Sequence record: OP380601.1
DNA: 64,000 nucleotides
Direction: 5' to 3' (one strand)
Part shown: piece after piece, positions 7,747-59,672 of the stretch
Layout of the letters: the number at the start of each line of letters is the position of its first letter
Numbering within the stretch: position 1 is the stretch's first letter
The notes under the pieces: generated by a model
Database searches by the model: none
What the model was told of the DNA's origin: nothing
What the model saw: the letters and a program-made list of their open reading frames with translations, nothing else
Made by a program: the position numbers and the translations under genes

Positions 7747-8741
7747 ATCATATCTTCACTCAAGAAAACATCGGGATGTTTGTATTCTTTCAACGGGTTA
7801 TATTTTGAGTTGGTTATTTCCAACATACCCGCATGATACCGAATCAGATGAAATTCATTAGACCAATCAGGTTTGGTATACTCTTCAACAATATTGGATG
7901 GTACTTTAACATCCCATTCAATCGGAGTCAACTGAATTTTTTCTGTTTGATTGAATGCCGCAATTTGGATATCCGTCAACATCTTAACTCGTTCAAATTG
8001 ATTTACAGTCTGGCGACCATATTCTTGAGGAACAAGTGTAATATCCAGAGCAGAGATACCAATAAAGAAATCCTCTAATTTGGAGAAAATATCAATATTA
8101 TCGAATATAGCCTTGGTTGAATCATCATGATGTGCATAATGATCGATCATCTCGCCATATTGACTAAGTGAATATAGTTCGTGGTGGCGAACGTTCCCCA
8201 TTTTCAAATTATCAATCATCGTATACATATGATTGATTAAAAAATCTTCTTCATCCGATTTTTTATATTCTTCAATTTGAAGTTCCAACCTTTCTATATT
8301 CCTAGCTGTAGATTCAGGAGTACGATCTTCCCAACGGGAACTAAGATCTAAATTATACTCTTTCTTATAGTTCCATTTTTTGGAACCATATTCAGCAACC
8401 AGATCATATACCGATGATTTTATGACAGACAAAGTGATTTCAGATCGAGTATCCTTTGTGGTAGAAAATAGATTTGGAACAGACCACTTATTATCTGAGT
8501 TATGACCAAGACCGTTCATTAGATTGTTGTGTGTAACGCCCTCGTTGTGCATAGAAACGTTTTTGAACAAACAATCATACCCGAGGTCTTTAGTTACCTC
8601 AAAGTCTCCGTAATCATCGTATACAGCGTTTAATGGGATGGCGCTAATACAAGCGCCATTTGCCATAGCCAATAATACTACTTTATCTCCACATTCTACA
8701 ATCTGGCGACTTACAGAACAAATAGTATTAAAGCTTCCCAT
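7743..8741 (-). CDS. hypothetical protein
   Basis: 332-aa ORF overlapping both neighbours. Confidence 0.7.
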   Translation of the reverse strand: MGSFNTICSVSRQIVECGDKVVLLAMANGACISAIPLNAVYDDYGDFEVTKDLGYDCLFKNVSMHNEGVTHNNLMNGLGHNSDNKWSVPNLFSTTKDTRSEITLSVIKSSVYDLVAEYGSKKWNYKKEYNLDLSSRWEDRTPESTARNIERLELQIEEYKKSDEEDFLINHMYTMIDNLKMGNVRHHELYSLSQYGEMIDHYAHHDDSTKAIFDNIDIFSKLEDFFIGISALDITLVPQEYGRQTVNQFERVKMLTDIQIAAFNQTEKIQLTPIEWDVKVPSNIVEEYTKPDWSNEFHLIRYHAGMLEITNSKYNPLKEYKHPDVFLSEDMI

Positions 8742-15474: not shown

Positions 15475-15650
15475 TTATTACCCTCGTTCGCCGCTTCTTT
15501 TAGTTCATTCAAATATAGATGAACATATATACCAAATTCGAACGGAGTCATTTCTTCAAGATCGGAATGACTCCATCCATCTTTTCGTAACTTATAAACT
15601 GTATTAAAGTGGTCGAATATTGTATTATTAACGAGGGTTAAGCGAAAAAA
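15471..15650 (-). CDS. gp51: gp51-like tail assembly chaperone C-domain; no start codon, predicted to be reached by -1 frameshift from gp26
   Basis: FFRLTLVNNTIFDHFNTVYKLRKDGWSHSDLEEMTPFEFGIYVHLYLNELKEAANEGNK resembles the T4 gp51 C-terminus; TGA overlaps the gp29 ATG. Confidence 0.7.
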   Translation of the reverse strand, partial: FFRLTLVNNTIFDHFNTVYKLRKDGWSHSDLEEMTPFEFGIYVHLYLNELKEAANEGNK

Positions 15651-16417
15651 CTAGCTACCCCCGTAAGAGTTACGATCTCTTCATGCCCACATTTTTTACA
15701 GCGTACTGGTATATTTAGGGAATGTTGAGGGATACCGGTAACAAAACTACTCATTTTAATGATAGCCTTATCATCTACATATTCCATTATCTCCCCTACA
15801 TCCTCATAAGGAAGGTCAATACCGGGTTTTACTATATCATTACCCATATGAACTTCATCGATACAACGAACGATAAGATTAAAAAGGTCGGATTCCTTCT
15901 GTACGTTGAAATATTCCATCTCACTAATATTTGGATATCTCATAAATACTATAAGATCATCGTTAAGAACTATTTTTCTATCAGGAGCTTCAGTAAGTCT
16001 AGAGCTATTCAAGTTTATATTAACTTTAATCTCGTTCCCACACTTAGCAATTTCACCATATTGGTCATAGGTAACATTACCTTCTTCATCTAAAATCTCG
16101 TTTGCACAAGTAAACATAGCTGGAATGATTGGAGAAGCTTTAGAAAGCTTATATAACGCCAAATATATAGATTCGAGATCGAATATAGGAAGTGTTTCAA
16201 CATCGATATCTTTGGTTAGAACACAGTTTTTAACTATTTGAATAATAGCTTCTTCAATACCTACACCAGCTTCGTTTGCTAACATTAGAAGTTTCATTTC
16301 TTTCATTACGAAAGCTCTAATAAGAATCTCTCTACCATCAGATAAAGTTAGTTTAGTCTGTTGTACAGTTTTTTGAATGGCTGCAAGTAAAACACTTTTA
16401 TCAATTTTAGTTGTCAT
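15638..16417 (-). CDS. gp26: baseplate hub assembly protein; likely start MTTKID at 16417
   Basis: IRAFVMKE, FMRYP, IPVRCKKCG...GVASFF as in T4 gp26; late promoter at 16450-16456. Confidence 0.85.
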   Translation of the reverse strand: MTTKIDKSVLLAAIQKTVQQTKLTLSDGREILIRAFVMKEMKLLMLANEAGVGIEEAIIQIVKNCVLTKDIDVETLPIFDLESIYLALYKLSKASPIIPAMFTCANEILDEEGNVTYDQYGEIAKCGNEIKVNINLNSSRLTEAPDRKIVLNDDLIVFMRYPNISEMEYFNVQKESDLFNLIVRCIDEVHMGNDIVKPGIDLPYEDVGEIMEYVDDKAIIKMSSFVTGIPQHSLNIPVRCKKCGHEEIVTLTGVASFFA

Positions 16418-16492
16418 TTTTAATAATTCCTGTTTAAATGGTCTAAACGTATTTAGGCATTGTATCATACTGATCAGATCCTCATGAACTTT

Positions 16493-16696
16493 TAGTTTCA
16501 ATTGAAATCAAATTATAAAGTTCTATAATATATTAATAGAGACTTTACACTTAGAATAAAATCGATATCGCCTCTGGCGCGGGCAAAGCCCGATACTAGT
16601 TTTACAAATGATAAAGATTGTCATTTAGACCTTTCAAATTATAAAGTTCTATAATATATTAATAGAAACTTTATAATTTGATTTCAATTGAAACTA
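16493..16696. repeat. 204-bp AT-rich element with perfect 30-bp terminal inverted repeats and two palindromic cores
   Basis: TAGTTTCAATTGAAATCAAATTATAAAGTT at 16493-16522 is the exact reverse complement of 16667-16696. Confidence 0.85.
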
Positions 16697-16800
16697 ACCT
16701 GTAGGACTGCGTATAAGGAACCTTTGCCAGATTAGGGGGAACCATACTGATCTAAACTACAAATCGTTCTGGCGAGTCTTTGGGTGTATTGAAAGAAACA

Positions 16801-16830
16801 AAAAAGCCTGCTTCGTTAGAAACAGGCTTT
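16801..16830. terminator. intrinsic terminator after gene 54
   Basis: AAAAGCCTG/CAGGCTTTT. Confidence 0.7.
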
Positions 16831-16833
16831 TAT

Positions 16834-17781
16834 CTATCGGATTGCTTTTAGAACTCCGGTAGTTCTTCTTACAATAGATTCAATCGAATCAATACCAGTT
16901 TCTTTACCTTCAGTTGGCATATGAACTGTGGTTGCAACTGCAAAAGTTACTGTAAACGTCGCTATTTGAGAATTGTTCTCAAAGTCAAGTTGAACCTCAC
17001 CAACCTCGATTGGAAAACATCCAGTATTATGTACTGTTGATCTTTTCACACCATGACGATCAAGGGTGATTATGTCTATTGGCTTTGCATATTGTTGGTA
17101 AAAACCAAATCTTCCGTTACTTGGGTTAACTATTGTATTTTGCCACGTTAGCATTAATGAACGTTCCTCATAACCGGGCGAGCAATAAAAAGTCATAGTC
17201 ATAGTCCCATAGTTTCGTCCCTTTACTTCGTGTCTAGGCAACTTATCTATTCGGTTAATCGTGGTTTCCAATGTAGAACTAGGAAGTCCAACACTCTTAA
17301 CCATTAACGCCAAGTCTTTATTTACATCGTAATCAGTTCCTAAGAAACCATCCAATATATCTCCGGCTCCAGGAATGATTTTAATAAGAGATGGATCCCA
17401 AGCACCAAATATCTTTTTCATACTTGGAGTAAGAACTTTATGGGCTTCCCCTAAAGCCATATCTTGTATCCTATGCCAAGTATACGAACTTCCAGAAAAC
17501 AATCCACCATTAACGTCAGGACTATTTGTATCTGGAAATATAGGTAAATCCATATTAAAAACCCCGTCATTATATAACGTAGATCTAAAATCTTCAAATC
17601 TAACAATAAACATATTGGCTCTTGCTAGATCTGAGTTTTCTACCTTTCTCATAAATCTAGTTAAATCGGGGATTTCGTTAGAATCCCCCTCATCAAGAAA
17701 ATTATTTATTGTATCTTCGCCAAATCCAATAGCACTATTTATCATGCTGTCGATTGACGGTATCGGTGGTATTAATGACAT
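16834..17781 (-). CDS. gp54: baseplate tail tube initiator
   Basis: DLARANMFIVRF, LALMVKSVGLP, FPIEVGEVQLDFENNSQIATFTVTFA. Confidence 0.9.
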   Translation of the reverse strand: MSLIPPIPSIDSMINSAIGFGEDTINNFLDEGDSNEIPDLTRFMRKVENSDLARANMFIVRFEDFRSTLYNDGVFNMDLPIFPDTNSPDVNGGLFSGSSYTWHRIQDMALGEAHKVLTPSMKKIFGAWDPSLIKIIPGAGDILDGFLGTDYDVNKDLALMVKSVGLPSSTLETTINRIDKLPRHEVKGRNYGTMTMTFYCSPGYEERSLMLTWQNTIVNPSNGRFGFYQQYAKPIDIITLDRHGVKRSTVHNTGCFPIEVGEVQLDFENNSQIATFTVTFAVATTVHMPTEGKETGIDSIESIVRRTTGVLKAIR

Positions 17782-19435: not shown

Positions 19436-19902
19436 TTCTTCAATCCTTTAAAGCCCATTTTCTTTAGAGCGATTTCAGTTATTATATTGAATTTCCATCC
19501 CTTCTTTTCACATAATGCGACTGTGGTTTTCCACTTATCATTATTTACTGCCCAAGTATATTGAGCATGTATGTATGCATTTTTAGCTTTCAATGTATTT
19601 CTTTTTGGTGGTACTGGGGGATAACATTCGTGTGCGGGCTTTACTTCCCAAAGCGATACGCTACCATCAATCCATTGTATATACATGTCCATAAAATACC
19701 GTCTTTTCTTTCCATCCGCATTTGAGAAGTAAGGTATAACGAGACATTCACTGTTCCAATATTTAACATCGGGATGGTTATCTAGAAGTTCCATAATGTA
19801 TTTTTCCCAAGAACTCCTATAGGTTACTTTTCTATGGTCCCCTTTATATTTTTCTGGATTCTTTACAAAGTATTGACCCTTATGAGATTTATTTCCAGCC
19901 AT
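19432..19902 (-). CDS. gp4: head completion nuclease
   Basis: KNPEKYKGD...YRSSWE...WNSE...RYFMD...EVKP. Confidence 0.95.
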   Translation of the reverse strand: MAGNKSHKGQYFVKNPEKYKGDHRKVTYRSSWEKYIMELLDNHPDVKYWNSECLVIPYFSNADGKKRRYFMDMYIQWIDGSVSLWEVKPAHECYPPVPPKRNTLKAKNAYIHAQYTWAVNNDKWKTTVALCEKKGWKFNIITEIALKKMGFKGLKK

Positions 19903-50879: not shown

Positions 50880-51368
50880 ATGGATTTAACAGATGTTACA
50901 AGAGCATTCGGAAATGGTGACTTGGCTAGACCAAACCTTTTCGAAGTTGAGATCCCTTTTATGGGTGATTCGCTCAGATTTAAAGTAAAAGCGGCTTCTA
51001 TGCCTGCTGCTACAGTAGAGCCGGTAATTCTTGGCTATCAAAATAAGAAAATGAAACTTGCGGGTGACCGTACTTTTGATGATTGGACTATTACTGTATA
51101 TAACGACCCAGAACATAATACCCGCCAACAGTTTATAGAGTGGCAAAATCTTGCCCAATCTCTTGGTCGAAATATTAACGGTGAAGCGCCAGCTACCTAT
51201 AAAAAGGAAGCTACAGTTCACCAGTTAGATCGTGCTGGTAATCGTACTCGTTCTTATACCATATTTGGATTGTGGCCTTCACAAATTTCAGAACTCGCCC
51301 TTGATTGGGATACCGGTTCTGAAGTTGAAATGTTTGAAGTGGTAACAACTCTGGATTGGTGGGAATAA
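50880..51368 (+). CDS. gp19: tail tube protein
   Basis: GDLARPNLFEVEI; AGDRTFDDWTITVYND. Confidence 0.97.
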   Translation: MDLTDVTRAFGNGDLARPNLFEVEIPFMGDSLRFKVKAASMPAATVEPVILGYQNKKMKLAGDRTFDDWTITVYNDPEHNTRQQFIEWQNLAQSLGRNINGEAPATYKKEATVHQLDRAGNRTRSYTIFGLWPSQISELALDWDTGSEVEMFEVVTTLDWWE

Positions 51369-51459
51369 TAAAAAGGGTGTGGGGGTATTTTACTATATCC
51401 CCAATTCCTTTACTTTTTAACTACCCTAAATAATGTATATAAGTTAAGGAACACTCATA

Positions 51460-59416: not shown

Positions 59417-59507
59417 ACATAATTATACCATATCTAAATATATAAAAGAAACAAAATTCGAGCACCGCGAGACGGCGAAGCCGTTGTTCGTTTCACTCAC
59501 ACTTTCT

Positions 59508-59566
59508 AATTATAAAGTTTCTATTAATATATTATAGAACTTTATAATTTGATTACACTTGAAACT
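59508..59566. repeat. third copy of the AT-rich palindrome seen at 16.5-16.7 kb
   Basis: 59508-59551 matches the reverse complement of the 16635-16680 palindrome over 44 nt. Confidence 0.85.
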
Positions 59567-59672
59567 ATATTAATTTTTGCATTTTTAGATTAAAAATGAT
59601 ACAAAATAGGAACCGAAAGGTTCCTATTAACTTATAGTTCATAAACCATCATTTTCTATGATATAATGAAAA

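Follow-up and report, generated by a model that had tools for sequence, protein, structure and literature searches.

In the T4-like Aeromonas phage avDM6 (OP380601.1; Straboviridae, Emmerichvirinae, Ishigurovirus), the 416-bp spacer between the genes of the baseplate-tail tube initiator gp54 and the baseplate hub protein gp26 contains a 206-bp sequence whose two ends are perfect inverted copies of each other. What kind of element is this, and what might it do at such a place? We approached the question by sequence analysis of a 64,000-nt stretch of the phage, referred to here as the window, and of the 234-kb genome and its relatives. Positions are those of the window unless the record is named; the record position is the window position plus 62000. 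An earlier note on the same DNA had offered two readings, i.e. a replication origin or unwinding element with iterated binding sites, and a non-autonomous, MITE-like mobile element.

Both flanking genes are on the minus strand, gp54 at 16834-17781 and gp26 at 15638-16417, and their names are taken from the records of phages 65 and 65.2. The intrinsic terminator of gp54 (16802-16831, minus strand) is conserved in all relatives and is possibly two-way, since T/A runs are found on both sides of its stem. The gp26 gene has a late promoter of its own, with the core CTAAATA at 16450-16456 (minus strand), i.e. outside the 206-bp element. We note that in the annotation of phage 65 an HNH homing endonuclease gene (65p115) is located two genes away from the gp54-gp26 unit.

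The repeat search placed the whole quasi-palindrome, which has no strand of its own, at 16492-16697. The inverted repeat at its ends, previously described as perfect and 30 bp long, is indeed perfect and measures 31 nt (16492-16522 and 16667-16697, 100% complementary), with 144 nt between the arms. A full palindrome of 48 nt is situated at 16634-16681 and has perfect 15-nt arms (16634-16648 and 16667-16681). A partial copy of this palindrome starts at 16508 and forms, together with the copy at 16634, a 58-nt direct repeat with 86% identity. Both palindromes of the earlier note are present in this form, one full and one partial, but they are not tandem in the strict sense because they are 126 bp apart. 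The 48-mer occurs twice in the window, the second time at 59505-59552, as compared to 0.00 occurrences expected from 100 shuffles of the window. When folded as single-stranded DNA, the segment 16488-16701 forms one long hairpin with an energy of -48.3 kcal/mol, as compared to -13.3 +/- 3.0 kcal/mol for shuffled sequences (z = -11.5).

The quasi-palindrome consists of two copies of one module that face each other. The left copy (16492-16556, plus strand) has the canonical orientation and is composed of a left arm (16492-16522), a centre (16523-16539) and a degenerate right arm that ends in TTAGAA. The right copy (16633-16697) is assigned to the minus strand by its flanks. Its right, i.e. outer, arm is the exact complement of the arm of the left copy, and its 17-nt centre is flipped with respect to every other copy of the family described below. 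In other words, it is the facing arrangement of two family copies that gives rise to the terminal inverted repeats, and the repeats at this locus that had suggested iterated binding sites (iterons) are palindrome arms instead.

The two GC hairpins that had been pointed out are both present between the arms, and neither has a strand. The first, CGCC-TCT-GGCG (16569-16579), is the variable hairpin of the family, termed hp, and is orthologous to CGCC-TCC-GGCG at the same locus of phage Aswh_1. The second, CGGGC-AAA-GCCCG (16580-16592), adjoins the right copy and is conserved in phage 65. The claim that the element has no open reading frame is nearly right: the sole frame has 33 codons (16523-16624, minus strand), lies downstream of the right copy and shows no clear sign of coding. 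It has a ribosome-site-like motif, AAAGG, and is open in phage 65 too, with 32 codons after a 3-nt indel and with 8 of the 33 residues different. Most of the differences between the two phages alter the amino acid, and what is conserved of the frame overlaps the hairpins and the module. We consider that the frame is probably not a gene.

The earlier proposal that the palindrome be sought in the whole genome and in related phages was fruitful, and further copies were found in avDM6 as well as in other Aeromonas phages. A unit of this family is ~115 bp long. It comprises an AT-rich palindromic module of ~65 nt, which begins with TAGTTTCA, ends with TTAGAAA and has a 48-bp AT palindrome as its core, and, at loci other than gp54-gp26, a GC-rich hairpin cluster, ~45 nt, after the module. 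The modules of avDM6 are found at 8.0, 47.1, 78.5 (twice, the pair at gp54-gp26), 121.5, 145.4 and 188.3 kb of the record. The 121.5-kb locus also falls in the window, where a single canonical unit made up of module and GC cluster (59458-59567, minus strand) is flanked by an inh-like gene/75-aa ORF on one side and a DprA-like gene on the other. About six units each are present in phages 65, 65.2, CC2, Aswh_1 and ZPAH1. In the phage collection 20 records match, all of them Aeromonas phages of 223-237 kb, with matches at 4-6 places each.

A comparison of the flanking genes indicates that the six loci are one-to-one syntenic in avDM6, 65, CC2 and Aswh_1, i.e. in two genera. No copy of the module was detected in a scan of 185,579 prokaryote genomes, and the matches in a pattern scan of IMG/VR were, chance matches aside, confined to phage 65, CC2 and one CC2-like isolate. 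We found no published description of the family in the literature searched on Ishigurovirus, on repeats of Aeh1 or on palindromes and origins of Aeromonas T4-like phages. The proteins encoded near the units are mostly of unknown function, and there was no DNA-binding candidate among them. A SegE-like gene for a GIY-YIG homing endonuclease (avDM6 record 145722-146618, minus strand) adjoins the 145-kb unit.

The copies within one genome are conspicuously similar. Paralogues are 90-94% identical, and positional orthologues of avDM6 and CC2/Aswh_1 are 80% identical, i.e. no more than non-orthologues. Between avDM6 and phage 65 the orthologous copies are 97.7% identical, as compared to ~85% for the surrounding DNA. 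Moreover, the centres are lineage-specific and common to all copies of a lineage (CTATAATATATTAATAG vs CTATAAGTATTTATATAG). Judging from these identities, the copies evolve in concert and under strong constraint. The unit also appears to be orientation-independent. In Aswh_1 the 145-kb locus carries the entire unit in inverted orientation, with a fully palindromised module, and at two loci of Aswh_1/CC2 the GC cluster is turned round with respect to the module. The GC hairpins always adjoin the module, and their side and orientation vary between loci and between phages.

In the GC cluster the stem of the central hp hairpin covaries freely between copies (ACGGC/GCCGT, CGCC/GGCG, CCC/GGG). The cluster is a mosaic with flanking blocks of two types. 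In the 8-kb and 121-kb units these blocks seem to have been exchanged at the hairpin; the arms read C-D/hp/A'-B' in the former and A-B/hp/D'-C' in the latter. The clusters of these two units (record 8113-8160 and window 59458-59500, respectively) resemble reciprocal recombinants joined at the central hairpin. A pseudoknot made of A-B/hp/A'-B' blocks was considered and rejected, as the blocks do not covary, the linker has only 2 nt and the cluster also occurs inverted. At the 188-kb locus a 76-aa ORF (MSQIDSNK..., record 188420-188650) starts 14-17 nt from the left edge of the unit in avDM6 and CC2, but phage 65 and Aswh_1 lack it. This distribution does not follow overall relatedness and suggests exchange at the unit boundary.

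How did the second copy at gp54-gp26 arise? The spacers of Aswh_1, ZPAH1 and CC2 contain one unit, which aligns with the left copy (16492-16556) and hairpin 1. According to the spacer alignment, ~195 extra bases that include the right copy are found in avDM6, 65 and 65.2 only, with an approximate extent of 16580-16774 and no strand. In avDM6 the insertion is bounded by a 7-nt direct repeat, TCTGGCG (16573-16579 and 16768-16774), the first copy of which coincides with the 3' half of hairpin 1. We do not read this repeat as a target duplication because phage 65 lacks it. The left and right copies have the derived CAATTGAAATC in common, the other paralogues having CAAGTGCAATC, which suggests an inverted duplication at this site or conversion of one partner by the other. 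Metagenomic relatives (Logan contigs from three runs) have the same double arrangement. The search for target-site duplications and empty sites that the earlier note had proposed yielded no convincing duplication, and no empty site was seen among the metagenome relatives. By this comparison the left copy is the ancestral resident of the spacer and the right copy an addition of the avDM6/65 lineage. We hold with high confidence that the element is a head-to-head pair of copies from a family that is conserved and fixed in position, and that the second of these copies was added in one lineage.

We also note a metagenome contig of 221 nt that joins 16320-16522 to 16649-16666, i.e. the junction that an inversion of the 144-bp segment between the repeats would produce. 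The Logan assembler works with 31-mers. The contig was not counted, as it is a possible graph artefact given that the 31-nt repeat may equal the word size of the assembler.

A more distant comparison is offered by phage Aeh1 (Cinqassovirus), the gp54 of which is 50% identical in amino acids to that of avDM6 and in which the gene order gp2-gp54-gp26 is kept. Its 505-bp gp54-gp26 spacer contains two direct copies of a diverged analogue (92% identity over 103 nt), in which an AT palindrome (arms of 19 nt) is accompanied by the hairpin GCGGC-TAC-GCCGC and by GC arms like those of Aswh_1. In total, eight copies occupy seven loci of the Aeh1 record (22.4, 49.6, 90.0, 120.0/120.2, 148.9, 187.1 and 230.7 kb), as compared to six loci in the Emmerichvirinae. 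Three of the seven are syntenic with loci of avDM6. The gp54-gp26 site has been doubled twice independently, in inverted form in avDM6/65 and in direct form in Aeh1.

The distribution of the loci along the genomes is also conspicuous. The six loci of avDM6 are separated by gaps of 39, 31, 43, 24, 43 and 54 kb. The probability of a minimum gap at least as large is 0.009, and that of a variance at most as small is 0.002; the result is unchanged when the random sites are restricted to long intergenic regions. We note that the spacing statistics of avDM6, 65, CC2 and Aswh_1 are mutually dependent because the loci are syntenic. In Aeh1, which is an only partly independent replicate, the gaps are 25-44 kb and the corresponding probabilities are about 0.0002-0.0008. 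GC and AT skew in avDM6 only track the strand of the genes.

The units are, in addition, among the least stable parts of the duplex. When the 30-bp windows of the 234-kb avDM6 genome were ranked by nearest-neighbour energies, the seven copies took ranks 1, 2, 4, 5, 6, 7 and 8 from the least stable end, which is to be read as one property of the family and not as seven independent events because the copies share ancestry. When the 50-bp windows of the Aeh1 genome are ranked likewise, its copies take places 1, 4, 5, 8, 9, 10, 11 and 27. The comparison with Aeh1 therefore indicates that position, spacing, dyad symmetry, the neighbouring hairpin and low stability are conserved even though the sequence has drifted.

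The module contains promoter-like elements. The plus strand of the left copy carries TTGAAA-16-TATAAT, which scores 11/12 and is seen only at the gp54-gp26 locus; the inward-facing -35 of the other copies is GTGCAA or ATGCAA. The inward -10 is TATAAG in 12/12 CC2/Aswh_1 copies, i.e. the critical T at -7 is replaced by G. Two further -10-like hexamers face outward and have no -35. The right arm carries TATAAT (variants TACACT and TACAGT), and the left arm carries TATAnT on the opposite strand. Variation in these hexamers is confined to positions 3 and 5, A2 and T6 being invariant in 26/26 copies. At the 8-kb and 188-kb loci a gene, with a Shine-Dalgarno sequence and a start codon, begins 14-60 nt beyond the unit, in the former case on its canonical side and in the latter on the other side. 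Given the -10-like boxes and the nearby gene starts, some promoter activity is likely. On the other hand, the ordinary early promoters of the phage (TTGACA/TTTACA-17/18-TAnnAT) are unrelated to the module, and a plain early-promoter role would leave the number, spacing, symmetry and degree of conservation of the units unexplained.

The late-promoter motif of this phage group, CCCTAAATA, is common to the regions upstream of ~10 late genes in the window (e.g. at 19902 on the minus strand, 25377, 33151, 43442, 45224, 51460, 54470, 55433 and 57224), and the T4 late motif TATAAATA is not enriched there, with 8 matches vs 10 expected. CTAAATA lies within 150 nt of 3/6 avDM6 units and 2/7 Aeh1 units vs 6-9% expected, a weak association that is confounded because the units are intergenic. 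An AsiA homologue is encoded at avDM6 record 51171-51395, ~4 kb from the 47-kb unit. The units have no TGCTT box of the MotA type. A search of avDM6 and CC2 for Pfam MotA domains, run without a positive control, detected none, so any middle-mode activator is unrecognised.

What might such a family do? Our preferred reading, to which we would give somewhat less than an even chance, is that the unit is a promoter-linked DNA-unwinding or cruciform element comparable to oriF and oriG of T4. It would act at the level of DNA and regardless of orientation. Transcription from the sigma-70-type -10 boxes inside the palindrome would open the duplex, and the opened site could then serve as a start of replication and/or of recombination-dependent replication. 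The GC hairpins would bound the opened region and would be the places where copies recombine, and at gp54-gp26 two facing units would give a 206-bp structure capable of forming a hairpin. As for the two readings of the earlier note, the idea of an origin or unwinding element is consistent with the computed meltability, the even syntenic spacing and the Aeh1 analogue, while the part of it that called for iterated binding sites falls away with the iterons.

T4 fires at least five dispersed origins (PMC3016281), and loci dispersed over the genome are likewise what we see here, six in avDM6 and seven in Aeh1, if these are origins. In oriF and oriG a unit of ~100 bp combines a promoter without a normal -35 with an A+T-rich unwinding element, where the transcript forms an R-loop (PMC3016281). 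The stability ranks place such a meltable stretch within the present units. The origins of T4 have no common sequence motif (PMC3016281), so an origin defined by a consensus would be unprecedented in the T4 group. A wider proposal, which we put forward with more hesitation than the reading itself, is that at least three genera of T4-like Aeromonas phages specify the starts of replication or recombination by a shared, co-evolving consensus, i.e. a meltable palindrome of 48-80 bp with built-in -10 boxes and GC-hairpin clamps at six or seven near-equidistant sites. This would be the first sequence-defined origin family of the T4 group, and the doubled gp54-gp26 site may be its principal member. 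Further points weigh against an origin: the GC skew only follows the direction of the genes, a MotA-type activator was not detected in the search without a positive control although AsiA is present, gene starts at 14-60 nt from the unit at several loci are also explained by a plain promoter role, and even spacing could serve another role at the level of DNA, such as topoisomerase or condensation sites.

The best-surviving alternative, possible in our view though doubtful, is a regulated promoter/insulator cassette similar to the PeSLs. PeSLs consist of a promoter and a stem-loop and recombine within the loop, and there are ~30 of them per genome, clustered in hyperplastic regions (PMC2839356, PMC4122927). 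The palindrome would then be a compact, (bi)directional sigma-70-type promoter and its dyad the operator of a dimeric phage regulator. The GC hairpins would be terminators or 5' leaders, the copies would be homology patches for modular shuffling, and at gp54-gp26 the inner promoters of the pair would converge and the outer ones diverge, with a hairpin terminator between them. The high-scoring promoter of the left copy, the outward TAnAnT hexamers conserved in all copies and the Shine-Dalgarno sequences beyond the 8-kb and, on the opposite side, the 188-kb units all speak for it. So do the signs of recombination, i.e. the mosaic GC arms seemingly exchanged at the hairpin between the 121-kb and 8-kb units, the indel of the 76-aa ORF exactly at a unit edge and the ~195-bp insertion at a hairpin sequence. 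Concerted evolution, too, would fit co-evolution with a regulator. However, there are only 6-7 copies, at fixed syntenic loci that include the baseplate late-gene cluster, where gp26 has its own late promoter, and not ~30 in hyperplastic regions flanking ORFans. The lack of resemblance to the early promoters, the inward TATAAG and the outward -10s without -35 also argue against a cassette of this kind, which moreover would not explain the even spacing and the extreme meltability.

An improbable third reading takes the units for another kind of DNA-structural landmark, such as topoisomerase sites, recombination hot spots cut by endonuclease VII or condensation anchors. It accommodates the dyad symmetry, the lowest duplex stability, the even spacing and the orientation independence, but it has no known precedent in T4-type phages, the sequence points to no specific enzyme and the conserved -10-like boxes are left without a role.

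We regard it as very unlikely that the units are genes of small structured RNAs, with the palindrome as promoter and the GC cluster as the body of the RNA. In favour of this, the hp stem covaries between copies, and at the gp54-gp26 and 145-kb loci the DNA reached in the canonical direction is non-coding up to a possibly two-way terminator. Yet the GC cluster is found in both orientations with respect to the module, no covariation is seen in the conserved A-B...A'-B' blocks, whose crossing order would make a sterically awkward pseudoknot, and the folds of the presumed transcripts are weak (z from -0.1 to -2.7). When the locus and one canonical unit were scanned against Rfam, only sub-threshold noise was obtained.

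Least credible of all is the non-autonomous MITE/REP-like mobile element, which we regard as essentially excluded: the perfect 31-nt terminal inverted repeats without an ORF, the TCTGGCG repeat around the ~195-bp lineage segment of avDM6 and the presence of the second copy in some lineages only would all suit it, but the inverted repeats are arms of two separate copies and single copies elsewhere have none, each of the six loci is syntenic in two genera and three are so in Aeh1 as well, the 7-nt repeat is missing in phage 65 and lies in a recombination-prone hairpin, the 185,579 prokaryote genomes scanned have no copy, the IMG/VR pattern scan matched, apart from chance, only the known isolates, and the Y1/RAYT transposase (Y1_Tnp, the one family searched) was not found in avDM6, CC2 or Aeh1 while 6 controls were positive.

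The result removes a false mobile-element lead and accounts for the perfect inverted repeat by a local duplication within the family. If the units are origins, they would also matter beyond this locus. As the origins of T4 have no recognisable motif, origins are not predictable in its many relatives; the family would supply a computable marker for annotating origin sites. Moreover, the choice and spacing of origins and the link between transcription, unwinding and recombination would become directly testable in a tractable phage-host pair. If, on the other hand, the units are promoters with an operator, they would represent a small regulon with unusually strict conservation and a new variety of PeSL shuffling cassettes.

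In comparison with known systems, the units resemble MITEs and REP/BIME elements in being short, non-coding, palindromic and multi-copy, and the pair mimics terminal inverted repeats. Unlike these, the family has no detected Y1/RAYT transposase, no target duplications and no insertion polymorphism among close relatives, and its copy number and positions are constant over genus-level divergence. With the PeSL/PmSL cassettes (Arbiol et al. 2010, PMC2839356; Comeau et al. 2014, PMC4122927) the units have in common a repeated intergenic arrangement of an AT-rich, promoter-like part and a GC stem-loop, recombination in or next to the stem-loop and an occurrence at boundaries of ORF indels. PeSLs, however, have near-consensus -35/-10 boxes with the stem-loop upstream of the promoter and are not long palindromes, whereas the present units have a dyad of 48-80 bp with hairpins on either side and in either orientation; PeSLs number ~30 in hyperplastic regions, whereas the units number 6-7 and are syntenic and evenly spaced. 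The oriF (uvsY) and oriG (gene 34) sites of T4 (Kreuzer and Brister 2010, PMC3016281) share no motif, are not palindromic and depend on MotA, of which no domain was detected in avDM6 or CC2. The present units have a strict consensus, dyad symmetry and GC hairpins. The six or seven units at near-equal spacing differ from the T4 origins in this respect as well, and their origin role is predicted from sequence. The likeness lies in the architecture, i.e. a unit of ~100 bp with a -10-like box, no normal -35 and an AT-rich, easily unwound stretch, and in the layout, as in T4 several sites are dispersed round a circularly permuted genome, some of them near late-gene blocks or strand switches (PMC3016281).
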